The position numbers were made by a program, and so were the translations under genes. A stretch of DNA of 64,000 nt, from sequence record MW879341.1. The stretch is one strand, 5' to 3'. A model generated the notes under the pieces. The model ran no database searches and was not told the origin of the DNA. It saw only the letters and a program-made list of their open reading frames with translations. Each line of letters begins with the position of its first letter. The first letter of the stretch is position 1. This document shows, one piece after another, positions 2,531 to 49,150 of this stretch.

Positions 2531-2559
2531 CCTAACCTACCCGCAATGAGTAGGTTAGG
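2531..2559 (+). terminator. hairpin terminator
   Basis: cctaacctac...gtaggttagg inverted repeat right after a stop codon. Confidence 0.6.
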
Positions 2560-2569
2560 GTTAGTATGC

Positions 2570-2586
2570 TTTCAGATATATATTAC
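2570..2586 (+). promoter_or_regulatory. early (virion RNAP) promoter, TATATTAC type
   Basis: tttcagatatatattac. TATATTAC is the phiKZ early-promoter core, and the motif recurs at 5262, 15967, 23102, 30379 and 35432. Confidence 0.75.
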
Positions 2587-2589
2587 TGT

Positions 2590-2830
2590 AGTGAGGGCAT
2601 AAAACGAGACATCCATTCGGACGTCTCACATTTGTGTCTTTTATAGGCGCGGCGAACTACCCTACAAGCGATCGCTGTTTATCTGGGTAGTTCGCCGCCA
2701 CCGACCCTCAAGTGCTCATCGTCGATCGAGTGTGTATAAGGCAGCAGGTCTCCGCGTATCTGCACGACCAAGGCTCGCCACACGTTCTCGTCACACTATT
2801 AACCTAACTGAGTATTTTATTACAAGTGAG
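2590..2830 (+). ncRNA. candidate structured leader or ncRNA
   Basis: About 250 nt with no convincing ORF after an early promoter. Contains a 14-bp stem (2649-2662/2685-2698), gagac/gtctc and ataaaa/ttttat stems, and agtgtg/cacact. Confidence 0.4.
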
Positions 2831-4582: not shown

Positions 4583-5251
4583 ATGCGTTCACATATGATG
4601 CTTTCCCCAATGAGCCTGTCTGGTATGGGTATGTTCGATAGTTCACGTATCTCTATTCCGGCGGTGGGTCAGCGTTTACCGGTAGTTGAAGGCTACGTTG
4701 TTATTCAGGATGACGCACGTCCTGAGTTGGCTGTCGTTATGTTTGATGGTGGGGTCGTAGCTACTGCCACTTTGGGCGTACCGCAGCAAGCGCACGAGTA
4801 TGGCTTTATGTCCGAGTACCACACAAAGTACGAAGTGGTGTTGAAAATCAACATCGCTGCTGACGAGTGGGATATCTCCATTAAGACAGAAGACCTCAGC
4901 TACGTACGCGGGTTGGTAGTGGCATGCAAGGAAAGTGAAATCGCACCACTGCTTCGTCTGTGTCTGGACGATGAAGTAAATGAAGAAGGGTTCACCATCG
5001 ATACTGACTACGTGGATAATCTGATCACCCGTCTGGAGAATCACTTCCCAGAACACGGGCTGGACTTCTACCCGAGCGATGCCTTCTTTAGCCACACCTC
5101 AGGCGACGAACCAGATAACCACCTGGTCGCTATCGTAGACCGCGTAACTAGCCGCCTGATCGGCTATGTGCAGAAATCCACTGGTGGGGAACTGACTCAC
5201 CAGCTGTTCCTTTCCACCGGTCGTAGTGACTTGATCTCAGCTTTACTCTAA
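4583..5251 (+). CDS. hypothetical protein
   Basis: 222-aa ORF with typical codon usage. Confidence 0.7.
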   Translation: MRSHMMLSPMSLSGMGMFDSSRISIPAVGQRLPVVEGYVVIQDDARPELAVVMFDGGVVATATLGVPQQAHEYGFMSEYHTKYEVVLKINIAADEWDISIKTEDLSYVRGLVVACKESEIAPLLRLCLDDEVNEEGFTIDTDYVDNLITRLENHFPEHGLDFYPSDAFFSHTSGDEPDNHLVAIVDRVTSRLIGYVQKSTGGELTHQLFLSTGRSDLISALL

Positions 5252-5261
5252 ATCAAAATAA

Positions 5262-5278
5262 TTTCAAATATATATTAC
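5262..5278 (+). promoter_or_regulatory. early promoter
   Basis: tttcaaatatatattac. Confidence 0.75.
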
Positions 5279-5336
5279 CTCTGTGCCAATAAGGGCACAG
5301 AGCTTTTAACTATTACCATTAATAAGGAATACCATT

Positions 5337-5768
5337 ATGTCAAACAAAGCAATGTACGCTGATCAATTCGTAGCTCGCCTGGTTGTCCTGCTGCCTAACG
5401 TGTCAATCGAGCAAGCTCAAAAGTGGGTAAATGCCGCCCGCAATGAAAACTGTGTGGAAGGTTTAGTGCAGCCAGTGGCTCACGCCATGGGTACCAAAGC
5501 TGGAATGATCAAAGAGTGGCGAGTACGTCAGTTGCTTAAAGCATTCCTGGTGCCAGAGAACATGAACACGTTGCCTGCCTTGAACTCACTGATTACTTGG
5601 TGTCAGGATAACTATAGCTGGTCTACTACCTGTACTAACACTGGTTCAGTGGGTGAACACTGGTTTGTTTGTAAGTCACTTGCAGAGTACGTTTCATACG
5701 GTACTCCAGCCAGAAAGATCGGCGAGCGTATGACAATGCGTCTGGCTGTATTATGTAAACCTCTGTAA
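5337..5768 (+). CDS. hypothetical early protein
   Basis: AAGGA SD, directly downstream of an early promoter. Confidence 0.75.
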   Translation: MSNKAMYADQFVARLVVLLPNVSIEQAQKWVNAARNENCVEGLVQPVAHAMGTKAGMIKEWRVRQLLKAFLVPENMNTLPALNSLITWCQDNYSWSTTCTNTGSVGEHWFVCKSLAEYVSYGTPARKIGERMTMRLAVLCKPL

Positions 5769-5866
5769 AAAATTACATAAGTGTCTAATAATGTAGAGAA
5801 AAGTACAGTCCCTCAGCTGAACTTTAGCCGTCCTCCACGCGGTCTCTGCTTCCACTACTTCGTCTA

Positions 5867-5897
5867 AAGGGATACCCTTAATTGGGTATCCCTTATG
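5867..5897. terminator. hairpin terminator followed by TATG
   Basis: aagggataccc-ttaatt-gggtatccctt, a perfect 11-bp stem. Confidence 0.65.
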
Positions 5898-5919
5898 TTC
5901 GCCACTAAGGAAATGAGCT

Positions 5920-6528
5920 ATGTTAGAGAAACAACATTCCAGAATACTGGAGGTTGTCAACGGTCTGATTGCTGAGTCCAAATTGCTGGATGTTAAGTAC
6001 GGTCCAGACGAACTCCCTGAATTAAACACTCGCGAGTATATCTCAGAGTTGTTAACCGGTGTTGGCTTTAAGTCCGATGAGTGTCGCTTCGAGTATATGG
6101 ATAGCTACATCGGCAACATTGTCCGCTTTACTGTGGAAGATGCCATTATCGTTGACCTGCCGGCAAGCGTTGCTATCCGAGCGATGATCTATTCCAAACT
6201 GTTGGTGTTGGGTAGTCAGATACTGGAACAACCTGATGAACTCCTCGACGATAAAGAGATCGAAGAGTGGATGTTGCAGATCGCTCAGTATTTCAAACTG
6301 ACGCGGGTCTATGACTCCAAAGAAGTTGTCACTGCACTGAGTGGCACTAAAGACGTGGCTGATGCCTACATGGCTGCCTTCTTCTTCTGGTCTGATGACA
6401 AGTCACTGTATGACGTGGTTCGTCAGATTGCTACACTTTACTTGCCGTCGAATGGTTTCCGTCGTGAGACTATCCTGAAGCGCGCAATCATTGCTTTTAA
6501 CTTATTAAAGAAAGAGAACGCAAAATGA
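5920..6528 (+). CDS. hypothetical protein
   Basis: 202-aa ORF with AAGGA upstream. Confidence 0.7.
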   Translation: MLEKQHSRILEVVNGLIAESKLLDVKYGPDELPELNTREYISELLTGVGFKSDECRFEYMDSYIGNIVRFTVEDAIIVDLPASVAIRAMIYSKLLVLGSQILEQPDELLDDKEIEEWMLQIAQYFKLTRVYDSKEVVTALSGTKDVADAYMAAFFFWSDDKSLYDVVRQIATLYLPSNGFRRETILKRAIIAFNLLKKENAK

Positions 6529-7883: not shown

Positions 7884-7972
7884 TAGAAACGGGACCTTAG
7901 GGTCCCTTTCATTACTCTTTTCTTTTTACCCCTATCATACGACACTATCTATTCAAACTCTGAGGGGGTTTT

Positions 7973-8699: not shown

Positions 8700-8738
8700 C
8701 ATAAAAATCGCTCTCAGTGTTTCTGAGGGCGTTTTATG
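8700..8738. terminator. hairpin terminator with CATAAAA/TTTTATG flanks
   Basis: cgctctcag/ctgagggcg stem extended by cataaaa/ttttatg. Confidence 0.65.
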
Positions 8739-8806
8739 CTGTATTTAAATACATTCCTCCCCAAATTTATGACGAAGTAGCTTTTTTACAACTGGGAGCG
8801 GTTTAG

Positions 8807-11619: not shown

Positions 11620-12015
11620 ATGTATTTAGTCTTCGGTAATCCTGAGTTGGACGAGTTATTACTAACCGTCCAGTCTCATCAATTTATAGACGTGCCACCT
11701 AACCCTTGGATGGCCGCCAATTACGTAACAAGGGCCGTTAGGTTTTTGCTGGGTGAGGATCTTACCGAGGACCAACATTTCGAAGAGTTCGTATTAGACT
11801 CATTGGAGCATTTGATCAATGAGTTCCTACGGAAACTTAATATGCCCTTTGCGAATGTGGACCTTCATGCCGAATCATGTGACCCATTCAACTTTTTCTT
11901 TATACTGGAGTTAAACGATGGATGTACTCGGCAAGGCCAATCTCCGCGACACCGTGAACTTTTCACTTTACAGTCGTACGCAAGCCATAATCAACATCAA
12001 TTTCAACGGATCTAA
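11620..12015 (+). CDS. hypothetical protein (array member)
   Basis: 131 aa; its tail overlaps the next ORF by ~98 nt. Confidence 0.6.
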   Translation: MYLVFGNPELDELLLTVQSHQFIDVPPNPWMAANYVTRAVRFLLGEDLTEDQHFEEFVLDSLEHLINEFLRKLNMPFANVDLHAESCDPFNFFFILELNDGCTRQGQSPRHRELFTLQSYASHNQHQFQRI

Positions 12016-12331
12016 AATCCTTGCGAAGTTAGATGCTGAGTCAGTACCGGCTGGTAGCGTAGATCCATATGCGTTACACGCTAACGTGTTTGGAACACTG
12101 CCTGAAGGAACGCCTTCTTCAGCAGACGACTACAACTGGTTGAAGATTCGACTGGCTAACGGTACTACCACGTACATTGGCGAACCGTACATTCTGGCAT
12201 CAACGTTAACTGTTGTGGATGGGGCTACTGTAGCCTTCTATGTCGACAATGCTAACCAAGATGTCATCAATGCGGTGACAGCAGCAATTGCAACCACAGG
12301 GAACAAAGTTGCAAAAGTTGTGTTTGTATAG
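11918..12331 (+). CDS. conserved phiKZ-like core protein (gp49-like by position)
   Basis: GGAG SD; immediately precedes the DNA polymerase, as in the phiKZ gene order. Confidence 0.6.
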   Translation: MDVLGKANLRDTVNFSLYSRTQAIININFNGSKILAKLDAESVPAGSVDPYALHANVFGTLPEGTPSSADDYNWLKIRLANGTTTYIGEPYILASTLTVVDGATVAFYVDNANQDVINAVTAAIATTGNKVAKVVFV

Positions 12332-12340
12332 CTATTATAT

Positions 12341-12445
12341 GAATTACACTCCGTGTCAGGCTTTCTACGGATGGAGAGTCGGAGTCAGTGGTTCGATTCC
12401 TTAAATAGCGCACATTGAGGCACTCCTTCGGGAGTGCCTTTTATG
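12341..12445 (+). ncRNA. candidate small RNA
   Basis: Lies between TAGCTATTATATG (12329-12341) and a cUUCGg terminator. Has an actccg/cggagt stem, an ACGGAU loop and GGTTCGATTCC. Confidence 0.4.
12418..12445 (+). terminator. intrinsic terminator
   Basis: aggcactcc-TTCG-ggagtgcct followed by TTTATG. Confidence 0.85.
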
Positions 12446-12511
12446 CTGTCTTTCTTTTTTTACAGACCTTGGTGATTGTATGACGAAGTACAAACTGAGG
12501 AATGTAGAAGA

Positions 12512-15771: not shown

Positions 15772-15966
15772 GAAACCTCCGAGTTAAGTATTTTTTTACT
15801 TTGAATGCTCTATATTATAGAACGAATGACTGCCGCAAGGTGGTCGTCGGGAAAAGGGTTATATAACGTAGTCTAAAAACTTTACCTGCAAATGACACAT
15901 TGTATGTAGAGTAATCTACGGTGCCCTTAACCGGGCATAATACCCTATGGGGTAGTTTCAAGATTA

Positions 15967-15983
15967 TTTCAGATATACATTAC
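15967..15983 (+). promoter_or_regulatory. early promoter of chimallin
   Basis: tttcagatatacattac, preceded by aagatta as at 30372. Confidence 0.75.
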
Positions 15984-16040
15984 CTTTGTGATTAGTAATG
16001 GAACTAATCCAAACATTGCAATGTTTAAGGAATCGCAAAG

Positions 16041-18149
16041 ATGGCACTGAAACGTAACGAGTCAGATAAGGCCGACGGGTCTTCTGGCATGGGGTCATTA
16101 GGGGACGCGCTTTTAGAAGCCGCCGCCAAGAAACCAGACAGCGCCGTAGCTGGCGAATTGTTAGCTGGAGGTGAACGTTCACTGGAGTCGGGTAATGCAC
16201 AGGTAATTAACCCAGAGCCTGTAGCACAACCAATCCCAGCGGCTACACCAGTACAACCAGCGCCTACCGCTCGTCCTGTACAACCAGCAGCACCAACCCA
16301 TAACCACAATTCACAAACTTTCGAAAGCAAGGAACAAAAGATGGAACAAGTTAACGCATACTACGGTCTGGACGATTCTTACTCTGGCCTGAACCGTACT
16401 CTGGGTCTGACCTCTGGCGCTGTAGACGTCAACGAGTTCAAGAAGATCGCAGAGAGCATCCTGGAAAACGATCCGGCTGCATCTAAAAGCTCTTACGGCA
16501 AGCCTTCCTTTATTACTCTGGAAGCTGCTGCCCTGGGTCTGCCGTGCAACGCACTGGCGATCGTAATGAACGCACGTAACGGCGCACAGAACGTGCCGCT
16601 GGTTTACACCCTGCTGATGGAACCATCAGAGCCGCTGGCACCACGCGAATACAATGTAGGCAACTACACTGTTGAGCTGAAAGCTGTAACTGGCGATATC
16701 TACGGTGACGACTTCGCTCGTGCTGTGATGAACCACGTTAAGAAAGTGACCAACTCCGATGCCGATCCAATCGACACCGGCGCTAACGTTGTACCGAACG
16801 GCCTGAGCCTGAAGGACGACGAAAACGCAACTCACGTTCGCAGCATCCTGTTCTTCGCATTCGGCGCACTGAACACCGTTTCCGACGTAATGTTCGGTAC
16901 TCAGAAATTCCTGAGCCTGAAAGTGTCTGGCCAACAGCAGCTGCTGGCTAACATCAACTGGTCTGGCAAACAGCTGGAAACTGCTGCGGGTAACCCTATC
17001 CGTGCAGACATCGTGCTGACCACCACCAAGCGTGCTCGCTTCGACCGTAACCAGACTGCTGCACACGCTGCCGCAACTCGTCCGGTAACTGCGCTGGCTG
17101 CGTACATGGACCTGTTCTACGCACCACCGCGTATCGAAGAGAACCCGAACCAGCAGCAGTACGGCTACAGCAGCTACGGTATCCCTGCGGATGCTAAAGT
17201 AATGTGGTACCCACGTATGGTTATCACTCGCTGCCTGCCACTGGGCAAAGTGATCAACGTTGGTGAACTGCTGCTGACTCTGGCGACTGCTACCGTTATC
17301 GGTACCAAGCACACCTGGATCAACGGCTTCCGTCCGGTGCGTGGTCAGGTTGGTATCCACGACATCGGTGGTCTGGGTTGGGAACATGAGTTCGTGAAAG
17401 GCCAGCTGGCTCCTATCGATTCTCAGGACCCTAAATTCAGCCTGCCTGGTCTGCTGAGCCAGACTGTTGTAGACAACCTGTTCTACAGCATGGACATCGA
17501 CGAAGTTGGTGACCTGACCTGGCTGGAAAGCTCACTGCTGGCAATTGCCCGTGGTGGTGAAGAAGCTGCTGCTGCGAACGATTACATCATCGCCGCTGCA
17601 AACGCACTGACCGATAACAAGTTCTCTGAGTGCTACGACGTGACTCAGCCGATTCTGGTTAACGAAGTCGTGCGCGTACACACTGGCTACTACATGGAAG
17701 GTGACCAGAAAGTTGACCTGCGTAACATCGACCACCTGGCAGTCCTGAACATGACCGGTAAGAACGGTTTTGGTCTGGCACAGAAATGGTCTAACGCGCT
17801 GGTAGACTACCCGAACAACAACGCACTGTCTCAGCAGGAACGTCAGAACATCCTGGGTGAGCTGGCACCGAACGCTGTGATCAACGGCTACGCATCTCGC
17901 GTGACCTTCAACTCCGCGTTCCTGTTCGGTCTGGCGTCTGCGATCTCTAAAGCTGGCACCACTCTGGTTGTCAACGACGATGGCCGTCAGGCTACTCAGG
18001 AAGCTCGCGTGACTGCATCTTACGCGTCCTTCGGTCAGGGTAACGTGTACACCACCTCCCTGGTATCTCAAGGTTACGGCAATGGTCAGAACCGTTCTCC
18101 GCGTGCTGTACAGACTCCTGTGTCTGGCAACATCTGGGGCAACATCTAA
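16041..18149 (+). CDS. chmA: chimallin, the major phage-nucleus shell protein (phiKZ gp54 / 201phi2-1 gp105 family)
   Basis: Blocks GNPIRADIVL, HDIGGLG, GYY...DLRNIDHLAVLN and RVTFNSAF match the chimallin family. Sits directly upstream of the nvRNAP beta' gene, with an early promoter, extreme high-expression codon bias and a flexible C-terminal tail. Confidence 0.9.
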   Translation: MALKRNESDKADGSSGMGSLGDALLEAAAKKPDSAVAGELLAGGERSLESGNAQVINPEPVAQPIPAATPVQPAPTARPVQPAAPTHNHNSQTFESKEQKMEQVNAYYGLDDSYSGLNRTLGLTSGAVDVNEFKKIAESILENDPAASKSSYGKPSFITLEAAALGLPCNALAIVMNARNGAQNVPLVYTLLMEPSEPLAPREYNVGNYTVELKAVTGDIYGDDFARAVMNHVKKVTNSDADPIDTGANVVPNGLSLKDDENATHVRSILFFAFGALNTVSDVMFGTQKFLSLKVSGQQQLLANINWSGKQLETAAGNPIRADIVLTTTKRARFDRNQTAAHAAATRPVTALAAYMDLFYAPPRIEENPNQQQYGYSSYGIPADAKVMWYPRMVITRCLPLGKVINVGELLLTLATATVIGTKHTWINGFRPVRGQVGIHDIGGLGWEHEFVKGQLAPIDSQDPKFSLPGLLSQTVVDNLFYSMDIDEVGDLTWLESSLLAIARGGEEAAAANDYIIAAANALTDNKFSECYDVTQPILVNEVVRVHTGYYMEGDQKVDLRNIDHLAVLNMTGKNGFGLAQKWSNALVDYPNNNALSQQERQNILGELAPNAVINGYASRVTFNSAFLFGLASAISKAGTTLVVNDDGRQATQEARVTASYASFGQGNVYTTSLVSQGYGNGQNRSPRAVQTPVSGNIWGNI

Positions 18150-18174: not shown

Positions 18175-18198
18175 AGGGGAGCTTCGGCTCCCCTTATG
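18175..18198 (+). terminator. intrinsic terminator
   Basis: aggggagc-TTCG-gctcccct followed by TATG. Confidence 0.85.
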
Positions 18199-18218
18199 TC
18201 CCTGTTTCTATTTTTGTA

Positions 18219-21108: not shown

Positions 21109-21137
21109 AGGCAGGAGGAAACTCCTGCCTTTTATGC
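21109..21137 (+). terminator. intrinsic terminator
   Basis: aggcaggag-GAAA-ctcctgcct followed by TTTATG. Confidence 0.85.
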
Positions 21138-24140: not shown

Positions 24141-24222
24141 TTACTTTAGACTTTTCTTTTTTACATGCTCGGTCAATATTCTGTCGTAATTGTATGGAAC
24201 CCACCCTTTTGGAGTCGTCGTA

Positions 24223-29213: not shown

Positions 29214-29239
29214 AGGAGGACTTCGGTCCTCCTTTTATG
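29214..29239 (+). terminator. intrinsic terminator
   Basis: aggaggac-TTCG-gtcctcct followed by TTTATG. Confidence 0.85.
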
Positions 29240-30028: not shown

Positions 30029-30373
30029 ATGTCTGAAGTCATCGGTGTATTGAAAGTTTCTACAGTCGAATGGGTTGGCAGTCCAGAAGGAACGGTGCCT
30101 GAATGTAGCCCACTGTCACGCGTATGGTCTCGTGAGAATACAGAGGAATCTCGTGCTCAGCTGTTCGATGCAATTGAGAAAGCTAAGATTGAGATTGATT
30201 ACTCGTCTAGCAGTAACGATTGGGTGGATGTTATCCGCACTATTGATGACCGTGTTTCGTACATTCATGGTGGCGATTATCTGGTTATTACAGCTGATAT
30301 GAGGGTCTCCATTCTCTCTGGCGTAAGAGCACTGACCGTGAGCGAAGACGGCGTAGTGAGCGTAGAGTTCTAA
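30029..30373 (+). CDS. hypothetical protein
   Basis: GAGGG SD. Confidence 0.65.
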   Translation: MSEVIGVLKVSTVEWVGSPEGTVPECSPLSRVWSRENTEESRAQLFDAIEKAKIEIDYSSSSNDWVDVIRTIDDRVSYIHGGDYLVITADMRVSILSGVRALTVSEDGVVSVEF

Positions 30374-30378
30374 GATTA

Positions 30379-30395
30379 TTTCAGATATATATTAT
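30379..30395 (+). promoter_or_regulatory. early promoter of the gp68/PicA operon
   Basis: tttcagatatatattat, preceded by aagatta. Confidence 0.75.
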
Positions 30396-30432
30396 CTTAG
30401 TGTAGTAATAGTGGAATGACATTGGAGCCGGT

Positions 30433-41196: not shown

Positions 41197-41259
41197 TAGA
41201 GCCCACTCCGTCCTGTCCGGCGGAGTGGGTATTTATGTCTTTAATAAGGAAATACAGTT

Positions 41260-47749: not shown

Positions 47750-49066
47750 ATGAAACCGTTAGAGTTCTTTAAGGCGGCTTGTAAAGCAGGTCGCTATCGT
47801 GAGAAAGCCTGGGTGTTCTCAGTCTTTGGTTGCCAGCTTACTAAAGATGAAGCGCTACTCACCGGTAAGGAATGGGATATCCATCGTATTGATGGTGTTC
47901 CTTATTGGGTCGACGCCGATGGAGAACATCAGGAGTTCACAGATTTCACCGAAGAGAAAAATATCCCACTGTTGGACCCACGGGAAGATATCTCTTTGGA
48001 GCCAGGAGATATCCCTAACCTGGCTGAGGCAGTGGAGACCACCGTTGGTAACTACTTCCTTAACTGGTACTGTCTGGTTCACTCGATGGGTAACAAAGTT
48101 CCGTTCCAATTGGGTGAGATCTCTGTTAAGAAGATCCTCAAGGTAATCAAACCCCTGTTCACCAACGACATCGTCAACCCTGATGGTAGTCTAAACATCG
48201 ATGCACAAGACCCAACGCTGATCTATGTGCATGAGTACGTTGCCTTCGTACGTAACACTGCTGCAACGGCAGGCTTTGTAGAAGTCAGCGTACCGTCTGC
48301 TACGCCATTTACGGCAACCGTGTCTCCAACGATCAAACCACTGCGTGAGAAATTGTTCAAGCAATACGAAGGACAACTCAACGATCCAACAGTGATTGCA
48401 AAGATCGAGAAAGAACTGATCGCTGAAGATAAGAAATGGATTGAGCAAGATCCAGACCGTGGATTCTACATCAAAGGTAAGTCCTTTAACGTTAACCGTA
48501 AGAAACTCTTCCTGATGGGTGGTATCGAAGAGAGCTTCAACGGTGACGGCACTTACACACTGGTTAAGACCAGTCTAAGTGAAGGGATGCGTGTCGAGAA
48601 TATGCCGGCTATGATCAACACCATGCGTGGTGGTGCCTACTCTCGTGGTGCACTGACGGCGCTAGGTGGTGAGGCGGTTAAGTTCTTCCAGCGTGTACTA
48701 CAGAACGCCACAGTTGCTGCGGAAGATTGCGGTGTGACTTACGGTATCCCGTATCCAGTTAACGCGGATAACCACGAAACACTGAAAGGTCGTTACCACA
48801 CCGTTAGTGGTGAAACCGTCGCTATTGGGGAAGACACCAAAGCGTTTATCGGTAAAATCATTAACCTGCGCTCGCCGATGGTTTGTAAGTTAGGTCACAC
48901 TGACTACTGTGCGAAGTGTATGGGTGATGAAGTTGCACGCTCACCAACTGGTCTGTCTGCGATGGGTAGTATCATGGGTAGTATCTTTATGGATTCCATG
49001 ATGCAGGCAACTCACGGTTCAGCACTGACGGTAGTAGACTACGACGCATTAGAACTGATTGCGTAA
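47750..49066 (+). CDS. virion RNAP beta' middle subunit (phiKZ gp80-like)
   Basis: Bridge-helix-like RGGAYSRGALTALGGEAVKFFQR, AEDCG, and Zn motif RSPMVC...YCAKCMG. Confidence 0.88.
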   Translation: MKPLEFFKAACKAGRYREKAWVFSVFGCQLTKDEALLTGKEWDIHRIDGVPYWVDADGEHQEFTDFTEEKNIPLLDPREDISLEPGDIPNLAEAVETTVGNYFLNWYCLVHSMGNKVPFQLGEISVKKILKVIKPLFTNDIVNPDGSLNIDAQDPTLIYVHEYVAFVRNTAATAGFVEVSVPSATPFTATVSPTIKPLREKLFKQYEGQLNDPTVIAKIEKELIAEDKKWIEQDPDRGFYIKGKSFNVNRKKLFLMGGIEESFNGDGTYTLVKTSLSEGMRVENMPAMINTMRGGAYSRGALTALGGEAVKFFQRVLQNATVAAEDCGVTYGIPYPVNADNHETLKGRYHTVSGETVAIGEDTKAFIGKIINLRSPMVCKLGHTDYCAKCMGDEVARSPTGLSAMGSIMGSIFMDSMMQATHGSALTVVDYDALELIA

Positions 49067-49078
49067 TAGCTATTATAT

Positions 49079-49150
49079 GTAAAAGTTATCATCGTAATAC
49101 ACGTATTCGTGGGAGAGTCGTTGCTTACCGACCTCCCACACTTTTTTCTT
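49079..49150 (+). ncRNA. candidate small RNA or terminator element
   Basis: Follows TAGCTATTATATG (49067-79). Hairpin gtgggag-a-gtcg/cgac-ctcccac followed by a T run. Confidence 0.35.

Follow-up and report, generated by a model that had tools for sequence, protein, structure and literature searches.

The gap between the SH3DP gene and the divergent DNA polymerase gene of Erwinia phage pEa_SNUABM_54 contains an element that is very probably a conserved, strand-specific structured RNA. It was analysed within a stretch of 64,000 nucleotides, hereafter the window, which is the final 64 kb of the phage genome (MW879341.1, 272,635 bp; subtracting 208,635 from a record position gives the window position). 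Our reading, to which we give about even chances, is that a clade of chimallin-encoding jumbo phages carries a small-RNA gene here, ~105 nt long and running from G12341 to the U-tract near 12442-12445; judged from the sequence, the odds that such an RNA is released as a discrete species, initiated at a promoter of its own, are even to somewhat favorable. A preliminary description of this DNA had placed a small RNA between a TATG-type promoter and a strong terminator, which is supported, and had proposed that it titrates CsrA or mimics tRNA, which is not; its sequence features were all recovered at the positions given. With the G of ATTATATG as start site of the phage non-virion RNA polymerase, the initial 54 nt would fold as a conserved hairpin capping the 5' end, a conserved linker of ~24 nt would be left single-stranded and a standard cUUCGg terminator would end the RNA. 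This layout would be that of a small RNA (sRNA) with its own promoter at a gene end and a terminator common with that gene. The analysis shows the conserved sequence blocks, the covarying + strand structure, the promoter-like behavior of ATTATATG, the terminator family and the complementarity of the linker, and from these we infer production of a discrete RNA, its timing and its binding partners.

Structure and conservation of the predicted RNA

Five versions of the element were compared, essentially from two clades: the window, X6v, L006, L007/L009 and L008. X6v is read-derived, a food-metagenome contig from public runs matched to the region (~86% identical), and its sequence was rebuilt by script from the listed differences to the window. 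The others are IMG/VR contigs with a related polymerase, L006 at 92% amino acid identity and L007, L008 and L009 at ~75%, L010-L012 being more distant. No DNA-level relatives were found among GenBank phages in near or distant mode, and the nearest GenBank protein relatives are only 35-40% identical. Pattern scans of IMG/VR and JGI metagenomes returned the same four contigs plus chance matches and no further relative, and a chimallin protein scan and two additional pattern scans gave no further version of the element. One more contig, L079, was rejected as a relative, the match being due to chance and lying within a coding region.

Upstream of the polymerase gene, the five versions share one architecture, composed of an invariant ATTATATG, a hairpin that begins at its last G, a single-stranded linker AUUCCUUAAAUAGC and a standard cUUCGg terminator. 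The blocks unchanged in alignment A1 are ATTATATG, UUACA, GUGUCAG, CUACGG, UUCCUUAAAUAGC, the UUCG loop of the terminator and UUUUAUGC, with TTTCTTTTTTTAC and TGATnGTATG unchanged further downstream. The shared motifs GTGTCAG and CTACGGA were found in no other intergenic region. A homologous RNA is absent from phage 201phi2-1, where the gap between SH3DP and the polymerase is an open reading frame (ORF) and covariance-model matches fit the terminator only. This gap (L054, NC_010821.1 42560-42997), from gp81 to the polymerase gp83, is annotated with a minus-strand ORF082; by eye, a plus-strand ORF of ~107 aa with a Shine-Dalgarno (SD) sequence, a terminator and the conserved polymerase promoter behind it is the more natural reading. 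The features of the element in the window are listed below, with folds given as minimum free energy (MFE) structures.

12334-12341, + strand: promoter core ATTATATG with predicted start G12341; invariant in 5 versions, 6 intergenic sense copies
12341-12394, + strand: 5' hairpin, the same fold being the MFE structure in all 5 versions
12341-12347 with 12388-12394, + strand: helix P1a, 2 pairs changed on both sides
12348-12353 with 12380-12385, + strand: helix P1b, 2 pairs changed on both sides
12354-12359, + strand: conserved unpaired UGUCAG of the 5' hairpin
12360-12367 with 12372-12379, + strand: helix P2, 2 pairs changed on both sides
12368-12371, + strand: apical loop, inside the conserved CUACGG
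12386-12387, + strand: CA bulge of the 5' hairpin
12395-12418, + strand: single-stranded linker GAUUCCUUAAAUAGCGCACAUUGA, unpaired in all MFE folds
12419-12446, + strand: intrinsic terminator with an 8-bp stem, a UUCG loop and then UUUUAUGC; six of 8 pairs covary

When trimmed so as to begin with the last G of ATTATATG and finish with the terminator, the five versions fold into a hairpin of 52-56 nt, ~15-20 unpaired bases and the terminator, and the hairpin starts exactly at that G in every one of them. P1b and P2 correspond to the actccg/cggagt stem and to the inner hairpin that had been noticed before, the loop of the latter being readable either as a tetraloop CGGA or as a hexaloop ACGGAU. 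One P1a pair switches between the clades, from A-U (that of the window) to U-A, and another passes from A-U (window, L006) through G-U (X6v) to G-C (L007/L008). Compensatory changes in P1b replace C-G by G-C and C-G by U-A; both partners of the U12350-A12383 pair are deleted in X6v, an independent variant, and L006 carries matching insertions on both hairpin strands. A covariance model built from the window and L006 recovers L007 and L008 at E about 1e-6 to 1e-5. Alignment A5, which has four rows from two clades and is itself fitted to the structure model, has 95.6% of its cells paired and 12 of 29 pairs changed on both sides (six of them in the terminator), with a covariation score of 0.632 against 0.311 for shuffled partners (0/500 reach it) and at most 0.115 for slid partners. 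The whole unit folds better than its shuffles (z = -3.75 to -4.2), mostly because of the terminator; the hairpin draws its support from covariation instead.

Since many of the pairs are G-U, the minus strand cannot form the hairpin, and the RNA feature therefore belongs to the + strand. A peptide is excluded by indels that break the reading frame. The earlier claim that no ORF lies here holds, with no + strand ORF of at least 40 aa between 12332 and 12475; a 21-aa ORF from the ATG inside TATG was rejected because its frame and length are not conserved. A CCGUG/UACGG pairing proposed by RNAalifold on a poor MAFFT alignment was also discarded, since no compensatory changes back it and it competes with P1b, which covaries.

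The same structure bears on the two functions that had been proposed for the RNA. Titration of host CsrA/RsmA was suggested by the ACGGAU loop and further GGA motifs, and the window version does contain three GGA in 12369-12383. The apical UCU-ACGGAU-GGA would resemble the high-affinity A(N)GGA hexaloop of RsmE/CsrA ligands such as that of hcnA. However, a single GGA is in the apical loop, the others being inside the terminator stem and helices P2 and P1b; in L007/L008/L009 the loop is ACGGGU, its GGA being changed to GGG, and the third GGA is lost in L006 and X6v. Known CsrA sponges have many exposed GGA sites. The likeness to CsrB/RsmZ-type sponges is limited to one ACGGAU hairpin loop, with one exposed, nonconserved GGA instead of many and no family match: Rfam gave no CsrB/RsmY/RsmZ-type match even at E up to 10. 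Across the window, the Rfam covariance models gave nothing at gathering score and chance-level matches only at E up to 10. We consider CsrA titration very unlikely.

Mimicry of a tRNA T-arm or T-loop, as in RNAs of the tmRNA or YrlA type, had been proposed from an exact GGTTCGATTCC at 12390-12400, which is a common tRNA T-arm sequence and might also come from a decayed tRNA gene. This sequence is indeed present, once in the genome, where ~0.13 chance matches are expected (2x genome length / 4^11), and alone it is not significant. Its flanks AGUGG and CCUUA give at most 2-3 pairs, which makes a 5-bp T-stem impossible. Instead, GGTTCGATTCC is composed of the 3' strand of P1a, a covarying helix, and the first linker bases, with GUGGUUC pairing with the 5' GAAUUAC strand. 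It is not among the unchanged blocks of alignment A1 and is replaced in relatives by GTACACATTCC (L007/L009) and GTACACGTTCC (L008), the 75%-identity clade having GUACACAUUCC, GTACAC(A/G)TTCC, at this site. ARAGORN found 0 tRNA/tmRNA genes in the window, the Rfam model RF00005 found no tRNA in the whole phage genome, and Rfam gave no tRNA, tmRNA or Y-RNA-like match in the window at E up to 10. Within the reach of sequence evidence, tRNA mimicry is refuted, and we regard it, as well as a decayed tRNA gene, as extremely improbable.

Predicted promoter, terminator and the flanking genes

The gene neighborhood is as follows; the 320 annotated features of MW879341.1 that were inspected are all labelled 'hypothetical protein'.

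11918-12331, + strand: SH3DP gene, upstream, for an SH3-fold protein associated with phage DNA polymerases; Pfam PF20287, E = 5e-24, annotated coding sequence
12451-12482, + strand: the polymerase gene's own middle-type promoter, TTTCTTTTTTTAC, 15 nt and TATG (12479-12482); matches phiKZ middle-promoter architecture (PMC4666361)
12512-14632, + strand: divergent family-B DNA polymerase gene of phiKZ-like phages, downstream; Pfam PF20286, E = 4e-243
16041-18149: chimallin (nuclear shell) gene; PF25677

The window also codes for a piece of the phage RNA polymerase beta subunit (47750-49066, phrog_2962). With both chimallin and this piece encoded, the phage belongs to the nucleus-forming jumbo phages and should transcribe with its own polymerases. 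Late promoters of phiKZ are TATG with the G as +1, and its middle promoters carry AAanTTACc centred near -24 (PMC4666361).

The 13-mer TAGCTATTATATG first noticed at 12329-12341 is present there and occurs exactly twice in the window (12329 and 49067); its TAG (12329-12331) is the SH3DP stop codon. A genome assembled from loci under a crude coding mask (94% coding) contains 6 copies of the 8-nt ATTATATG in 272,635 bp, and 6/6 are intergenic against 6% expected. The intergenic share rises with motif length, from 11% for TATG to 18% for TATATG and 39% for TTATATG. The 8-nt core is enriched, whereas a 10-nt version showed no enrichment as a promoter motif genome-wide. All six copies are in sense orientation, pointing to the next gene. 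Half of them (3/6) are found 30-40 nt ahead of an SD sequence and start codon, with no upstream gene end nearby, and one of the genes behind them at the distance of a 5' untranslated region (5'UTR) codes for a virion structural protein (phrog_3293); the other three (this element, window 49072 and record 197834) are followed by non-coding sequence and a terminator. ATTATATG is invariant although the bases immediately upstream diverge strongly in X6v, and in relatives the TATTATATG sites have AAAATTAC or TTAATTACC at -20 to -24. Being always intergenic and in sense, with three copies 30-40 nt before a start, ATTATATG behaves, at the level of the motif, like the start-site core of a phiKZ-type TATG phage promoter.

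The terminator described earlier was found at 12419-12438 as GGCACTCC-TTCG-GGAGTGCC, then TTTTATGC; the RNA form is GGCACUCC-UUCG-GGAGUGCC followed by UUUUAUGC, with an additional TATG at 12442-12445. It lies 78-98 nt past the predicted +1, with no conserved ORF between. A module of hairpin plus TTTTATGC, often of the cUUCGg type, has dozens of copies in the genome. Terminator hairpins are nearly always followed by TTTTATGC(C/T)G (in the window, for example, 8709-8740, 18195-18215, 21110-21136, 29215-29239 and 41200-41237), and 27/42 copies of TTTTATG are intergenic; it looks as if the terminator and a TATG start-site motif together make up a single stop-and-restart module.

The unit follows the SH3DP stop codon immediately and so doubles as the 3' end of SH3DP mRNA. 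It is possible that the element has no promoter of its own and is a structured 3' end that protects this mRNA from 3' exonucleases, with ATTATATG conserved for another reason. The unit begins 2 nt past the stop codon and shares the gene's only terminator, and the second 13-mer copy at 49067 likewise adjoins a stop codon and precedes a terminator. However, all six ATTATATG sites are promoter-like, including the three at 5'UTR distance from start codons without a nearby upstream gene end, and the start of the hairpin coincides exactly with the predicted +1 in all versions. A pairing at the base of the hairpin between the upstream GCUAUU and AAUAGC, seen in one MFE structure, was rejected since it is broken in L006 and L007. 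In other genes of the phage the terminator adjoins the stop codon, with no ~90 nt of conserved structure in between, and a protective 3' end needs no invariant single-stranded 13-mer. We find a plain 3' end of the SH3DP mRNA improbable.

Another alternative, which we consider fairly unlikely, is that the element works in cis as a leader of the DNA polymerase gene, where transcripts from ATTATATG stop at the terminator or read through and the short RNA is a by-product. The hairpin could then be an attenuator or a riboswitch-like sensor, or an RNA like put of phage HK022 that makes the phage polymerase terminator-resistant. The order of promoter, structured RNA, terminator and gene is that of an attenuator, and premature-termination products of 5'UTRs account for 8/11 short RNAs in 201phi2-1 and many in phiKZ. 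The conserved unpaired UGUCAG and CUACGG of the hairpin suggest a specific contact with a ligand or protein, and L010, at 43% amino acid identity, keeps a promoter-structure-terminator unit of unrelated sequence at the same place before its polymerase gene. Against this, there is no conserved alternative pairing competing with the terminator, which, with 8 bp and a UUCG loop, is very stable. The hairpin repeats 5-7 nt of the terminator 3' strand (GGAGU in the window); this repeat, tried as an antiterminator, is lost in X6v and L006, and Rfam gave no riboswitch match at E up to 10. The put RNA is a cis-acting antitermination RNA with two hairpins. The element resembles it in that a conserved hairpin, itself with conserved unpaired bases, is placed near the promoter and immediately ahead of a terminator; it differs in having one hairpin instead of two and a downstream gene with its own promoter.

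That promoter, the TTTCTTTTTTTAC-N15-TATG block just past the terminator, is conserved in L006-L010 and in 201phi2-1 (L010 2434-2470; L054 1095-1136), though the polymerases of the latter comparison are ~37% identical and 201phi2-1 is without the RNA. Conservation of the block downstream of the unit in L010 and 201phi2-1 indicates that the polymerase gene has its own promoter. A cis element also leaves the invariant single-stranded linker, which is complementary to ribosome-binding sites (RBSs), unexplained. The T-rich block of the polymerase promoter recurs at window 7915-7927 and 24150-24163.

Further promoter-to-terminator units are present in the genome. The second TAGCTATTATATG copy (window 49067-49150) adjoins the stop codon of the RNA polymerase beta-subunit gene at 47750-49066 and leads into ~70 nt of non-coding sequence that ends in a terminator (GUGGGAG...CUCCCAC and a U-run) and TTATGCC. 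We regard 49067-49150, where the promoter is of the same subtype, as another candidate small RNA; it has no nucleotide match in G003, a 166-kb relative. The third ATTATATG, at record 197834-198090 (L050), has TTAC at -24 and then ~250 nt without an ORF, including the purine-rich GGGGGAGGAUAAAGGAGGGGG; the first 75 nt of this unit are 83% identical in G003, as is also seen in L045/L046. At window 5762-5919, AAAAATTACA (a phiKZ middle-promoter motif), ~120 nt of non-coding sequence, a terminator and TATG form another promoter-to-terminator unit, conserved in the 75% clade (L042/L043), where GTATTATATG is present.

Proposed linker pairing and candidate targets

Returning to the reading of the element as an sRNA gene, its most likely mode of action is masking of RBSs by base-pairing, which is plausible but unproven and which we propose tentatively from sequence complementarity. 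The unpaired linker 5'-GAUUCCUUAAAUAGCGC-3' holds an anti-SD core, the RBS of this phage being typically UAAGGAA. Its core UUCCUUAAAUAGC is invariant in the window, L006 and L007/L009 and is changed by one extra A in L008 and by A12405U in X6v; antisense to the extended RBS motif of the phage, it is the putative seed. The linker AUUCCUUAAAUAG would pair with ribosome-binding regions of phage mRNAs carrying (C)UAUU(U)AAGGAAU, thereby occluding the SD sequence.

A complementarity scan that covered all translation-initiation regions of the phage genome brought out an extended motif that recurs, (C)TATT(T)AAGGAAT, to which the linker is antisense. CTATT(T)AAGGAAT has 4 occurrences besides the RNA gene, each just ahead of a start codon. 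The form (C)TATT(T)AAGGAAT(A/C) precedes several unrelated genes (record 143721, 157584, 183016, 202583 and 114567), three of which share CTATTAAGGAATACCAT. As a control, the UUCCUU core was kept fixed, the flanks were shuffled, and uninterrupted runs of at least 11 Watson-Crick pairs with an RBS were counted. The true linker reached 4 genes in the window phage against a control mean of 0.20 (p about 0.03), and 2 genes in G003 against 0.09 (p = 0.005), where chimallin was not counted because it is cut by the contig end. Co-folding kept both RNA hairpins and paired the linker with the RBS, with a gain of -11 to -21 kcal/mol.

The candidate target in trans that emerges from these comparisons is the chimallin mRNA.

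16022-16034, + strand: chimallin 5'UTR/SD segment UGUUUAAGGAAUC, candidate trans target, complementary to linker 12395-12407

The chimallin RBS could form 12-13 consecutive bp with the linker in both clades (window/L006 and L007/L009), and a 22-nt block of its 5'UTR, AACAUUGCAAUGUUUAAGGAAU, is identical in both while the proteins are only 53% identical. A flanking pair between linker and chimallin mRNA changes from G:C in the window clade to C:G in L007/L009. Chimallin is the only target kept in both clades; we treat this as a lead, not a demonstration, and that it is the true target seems doubtful to us. A further RBS sequence at the chimallin gene, GCAAGGAACAAAAGAUG, showed no linker complementarity beyond AAGGAA. 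A 5'UTR block of the gene, AACATTGCAATGTTTAAGGAAT (window 16010-16034; L007 about 6000-6030), is invariant and has a palindrome, ACATTGCAATGT, just before the SD. An AT-rich early-promoter-like repeat, ATTTCAGATATATATTAC(C), has 4 copies in the window (2557-2593, 5249-5285, 15954-15990 and 30366-30402), one of them upstream of chimallin.

A number of points weigh against the sRNA reading and against pairing of its linker with RBSs. The covariation stems from few independent events, because there are only five versions in essentially two clades, and the four rows of alignment A5 share that restriction; the hairpin alone is not unusually stable (z = -1.2). The promoter is proposed by analogy with phiKZ, its upstream -24 region fits the middle-promoter motif only in part, and the U-tail is short (4-5 U). 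Public runs matched to the region gave DNA contigs only, with no RNA run containing the phage. Regarding the pairing, duplex energies are not exceptional when compared with fully shuffled linkers (1/40 and 7/40 shuffles equal them), and an anti-SD sequence will match many RBSs anyway. Orthologues of the strongest non-chimallin matches do not keep the complementarity; for the strongest match of all, at record 143738 (17 bp, one bulge), the orthologue keeps only a split 8 + 5 bp. As for chimallin, the extra flanking C:G pair of L007 needs the terminal hairpin pair to be opened, A12405U in X6v would cut the duplex to 10 bp unless the target changed too, and linker and chimallin UTR may each be conserved for their own reasons.

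Relation to known short RNAs and significance

As a predicted member, the element fits the known class of short promoter-to-terminator RNAs of jumbo phages and is not homologous to the published ones. Long-read 5'-end sequencing of phiKZ and 201phi2-1 revealed many units with a terminator closely behind a promoter, and these give abundant RNAs of <250 nt, two of them confirmed by northern blot and one conserved across genera, none with a known function (PMC10914365, PMC11512511). Examples among the ONT-cappable-seq candidates are a 71-nt RNA upstream of PHIKZ221, a 141-nt RNA upstream of PHIKZ302 and sRNA005 of 201phi2-1. Like them, the element is found in a jumbo phage of the same family, with a phage-polymerase promoter and then an intrinsic terminator within 250 nt and no ORF, before a core gene and with secondary structure conserved among relatives. 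Unlike them, it is of unrelated sequence and at another locus, and has a conserved single-stranded anti-RBS stretch with a candidate target; theirs were seen as transcripts, whereas the element here is predicted.

In bacterial sRNAs of the DapZ/MicL type, which come from gene 3' ends, the promoter is the sRNA's own and the terminator is that of the mRNA. The element shares with them a promoter at the end of the upstream ORF, a common terminator, a layout of 5' structure, seed and terminator, and the proposed occlusion of RBSs. It differs in its predicted transcription from a TATG start by the multisubunit polymerase of the phage instead of a sigma-70 polymerase, in its short U-tail and in having candidate targets among phage, not host, mRNAs.

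A study of early phiKZ infection concluded that the phage, should it make small RNAs, would express them late (PMC8244752). It is conceivable, though improbable in our judgment, that a late small RNA masks the RBSs of early phage messages, chimallin mRNA foremost, as an RNA-based switch from early to late expression.

Short non-coding RNAs of phiKZ-like phages have been seen in transcriptomes, with no function or target assigned to any. The element described here is a small-RNA candidate with comparative backing, namely structure covariation and a conserved seed, and its analysis also gives this unannotated Erwinia jumbo phage a working grammar of promoters and terminators. If the link to chimallin were true, synthesis of the phage nucleus shell would be under RNA control.

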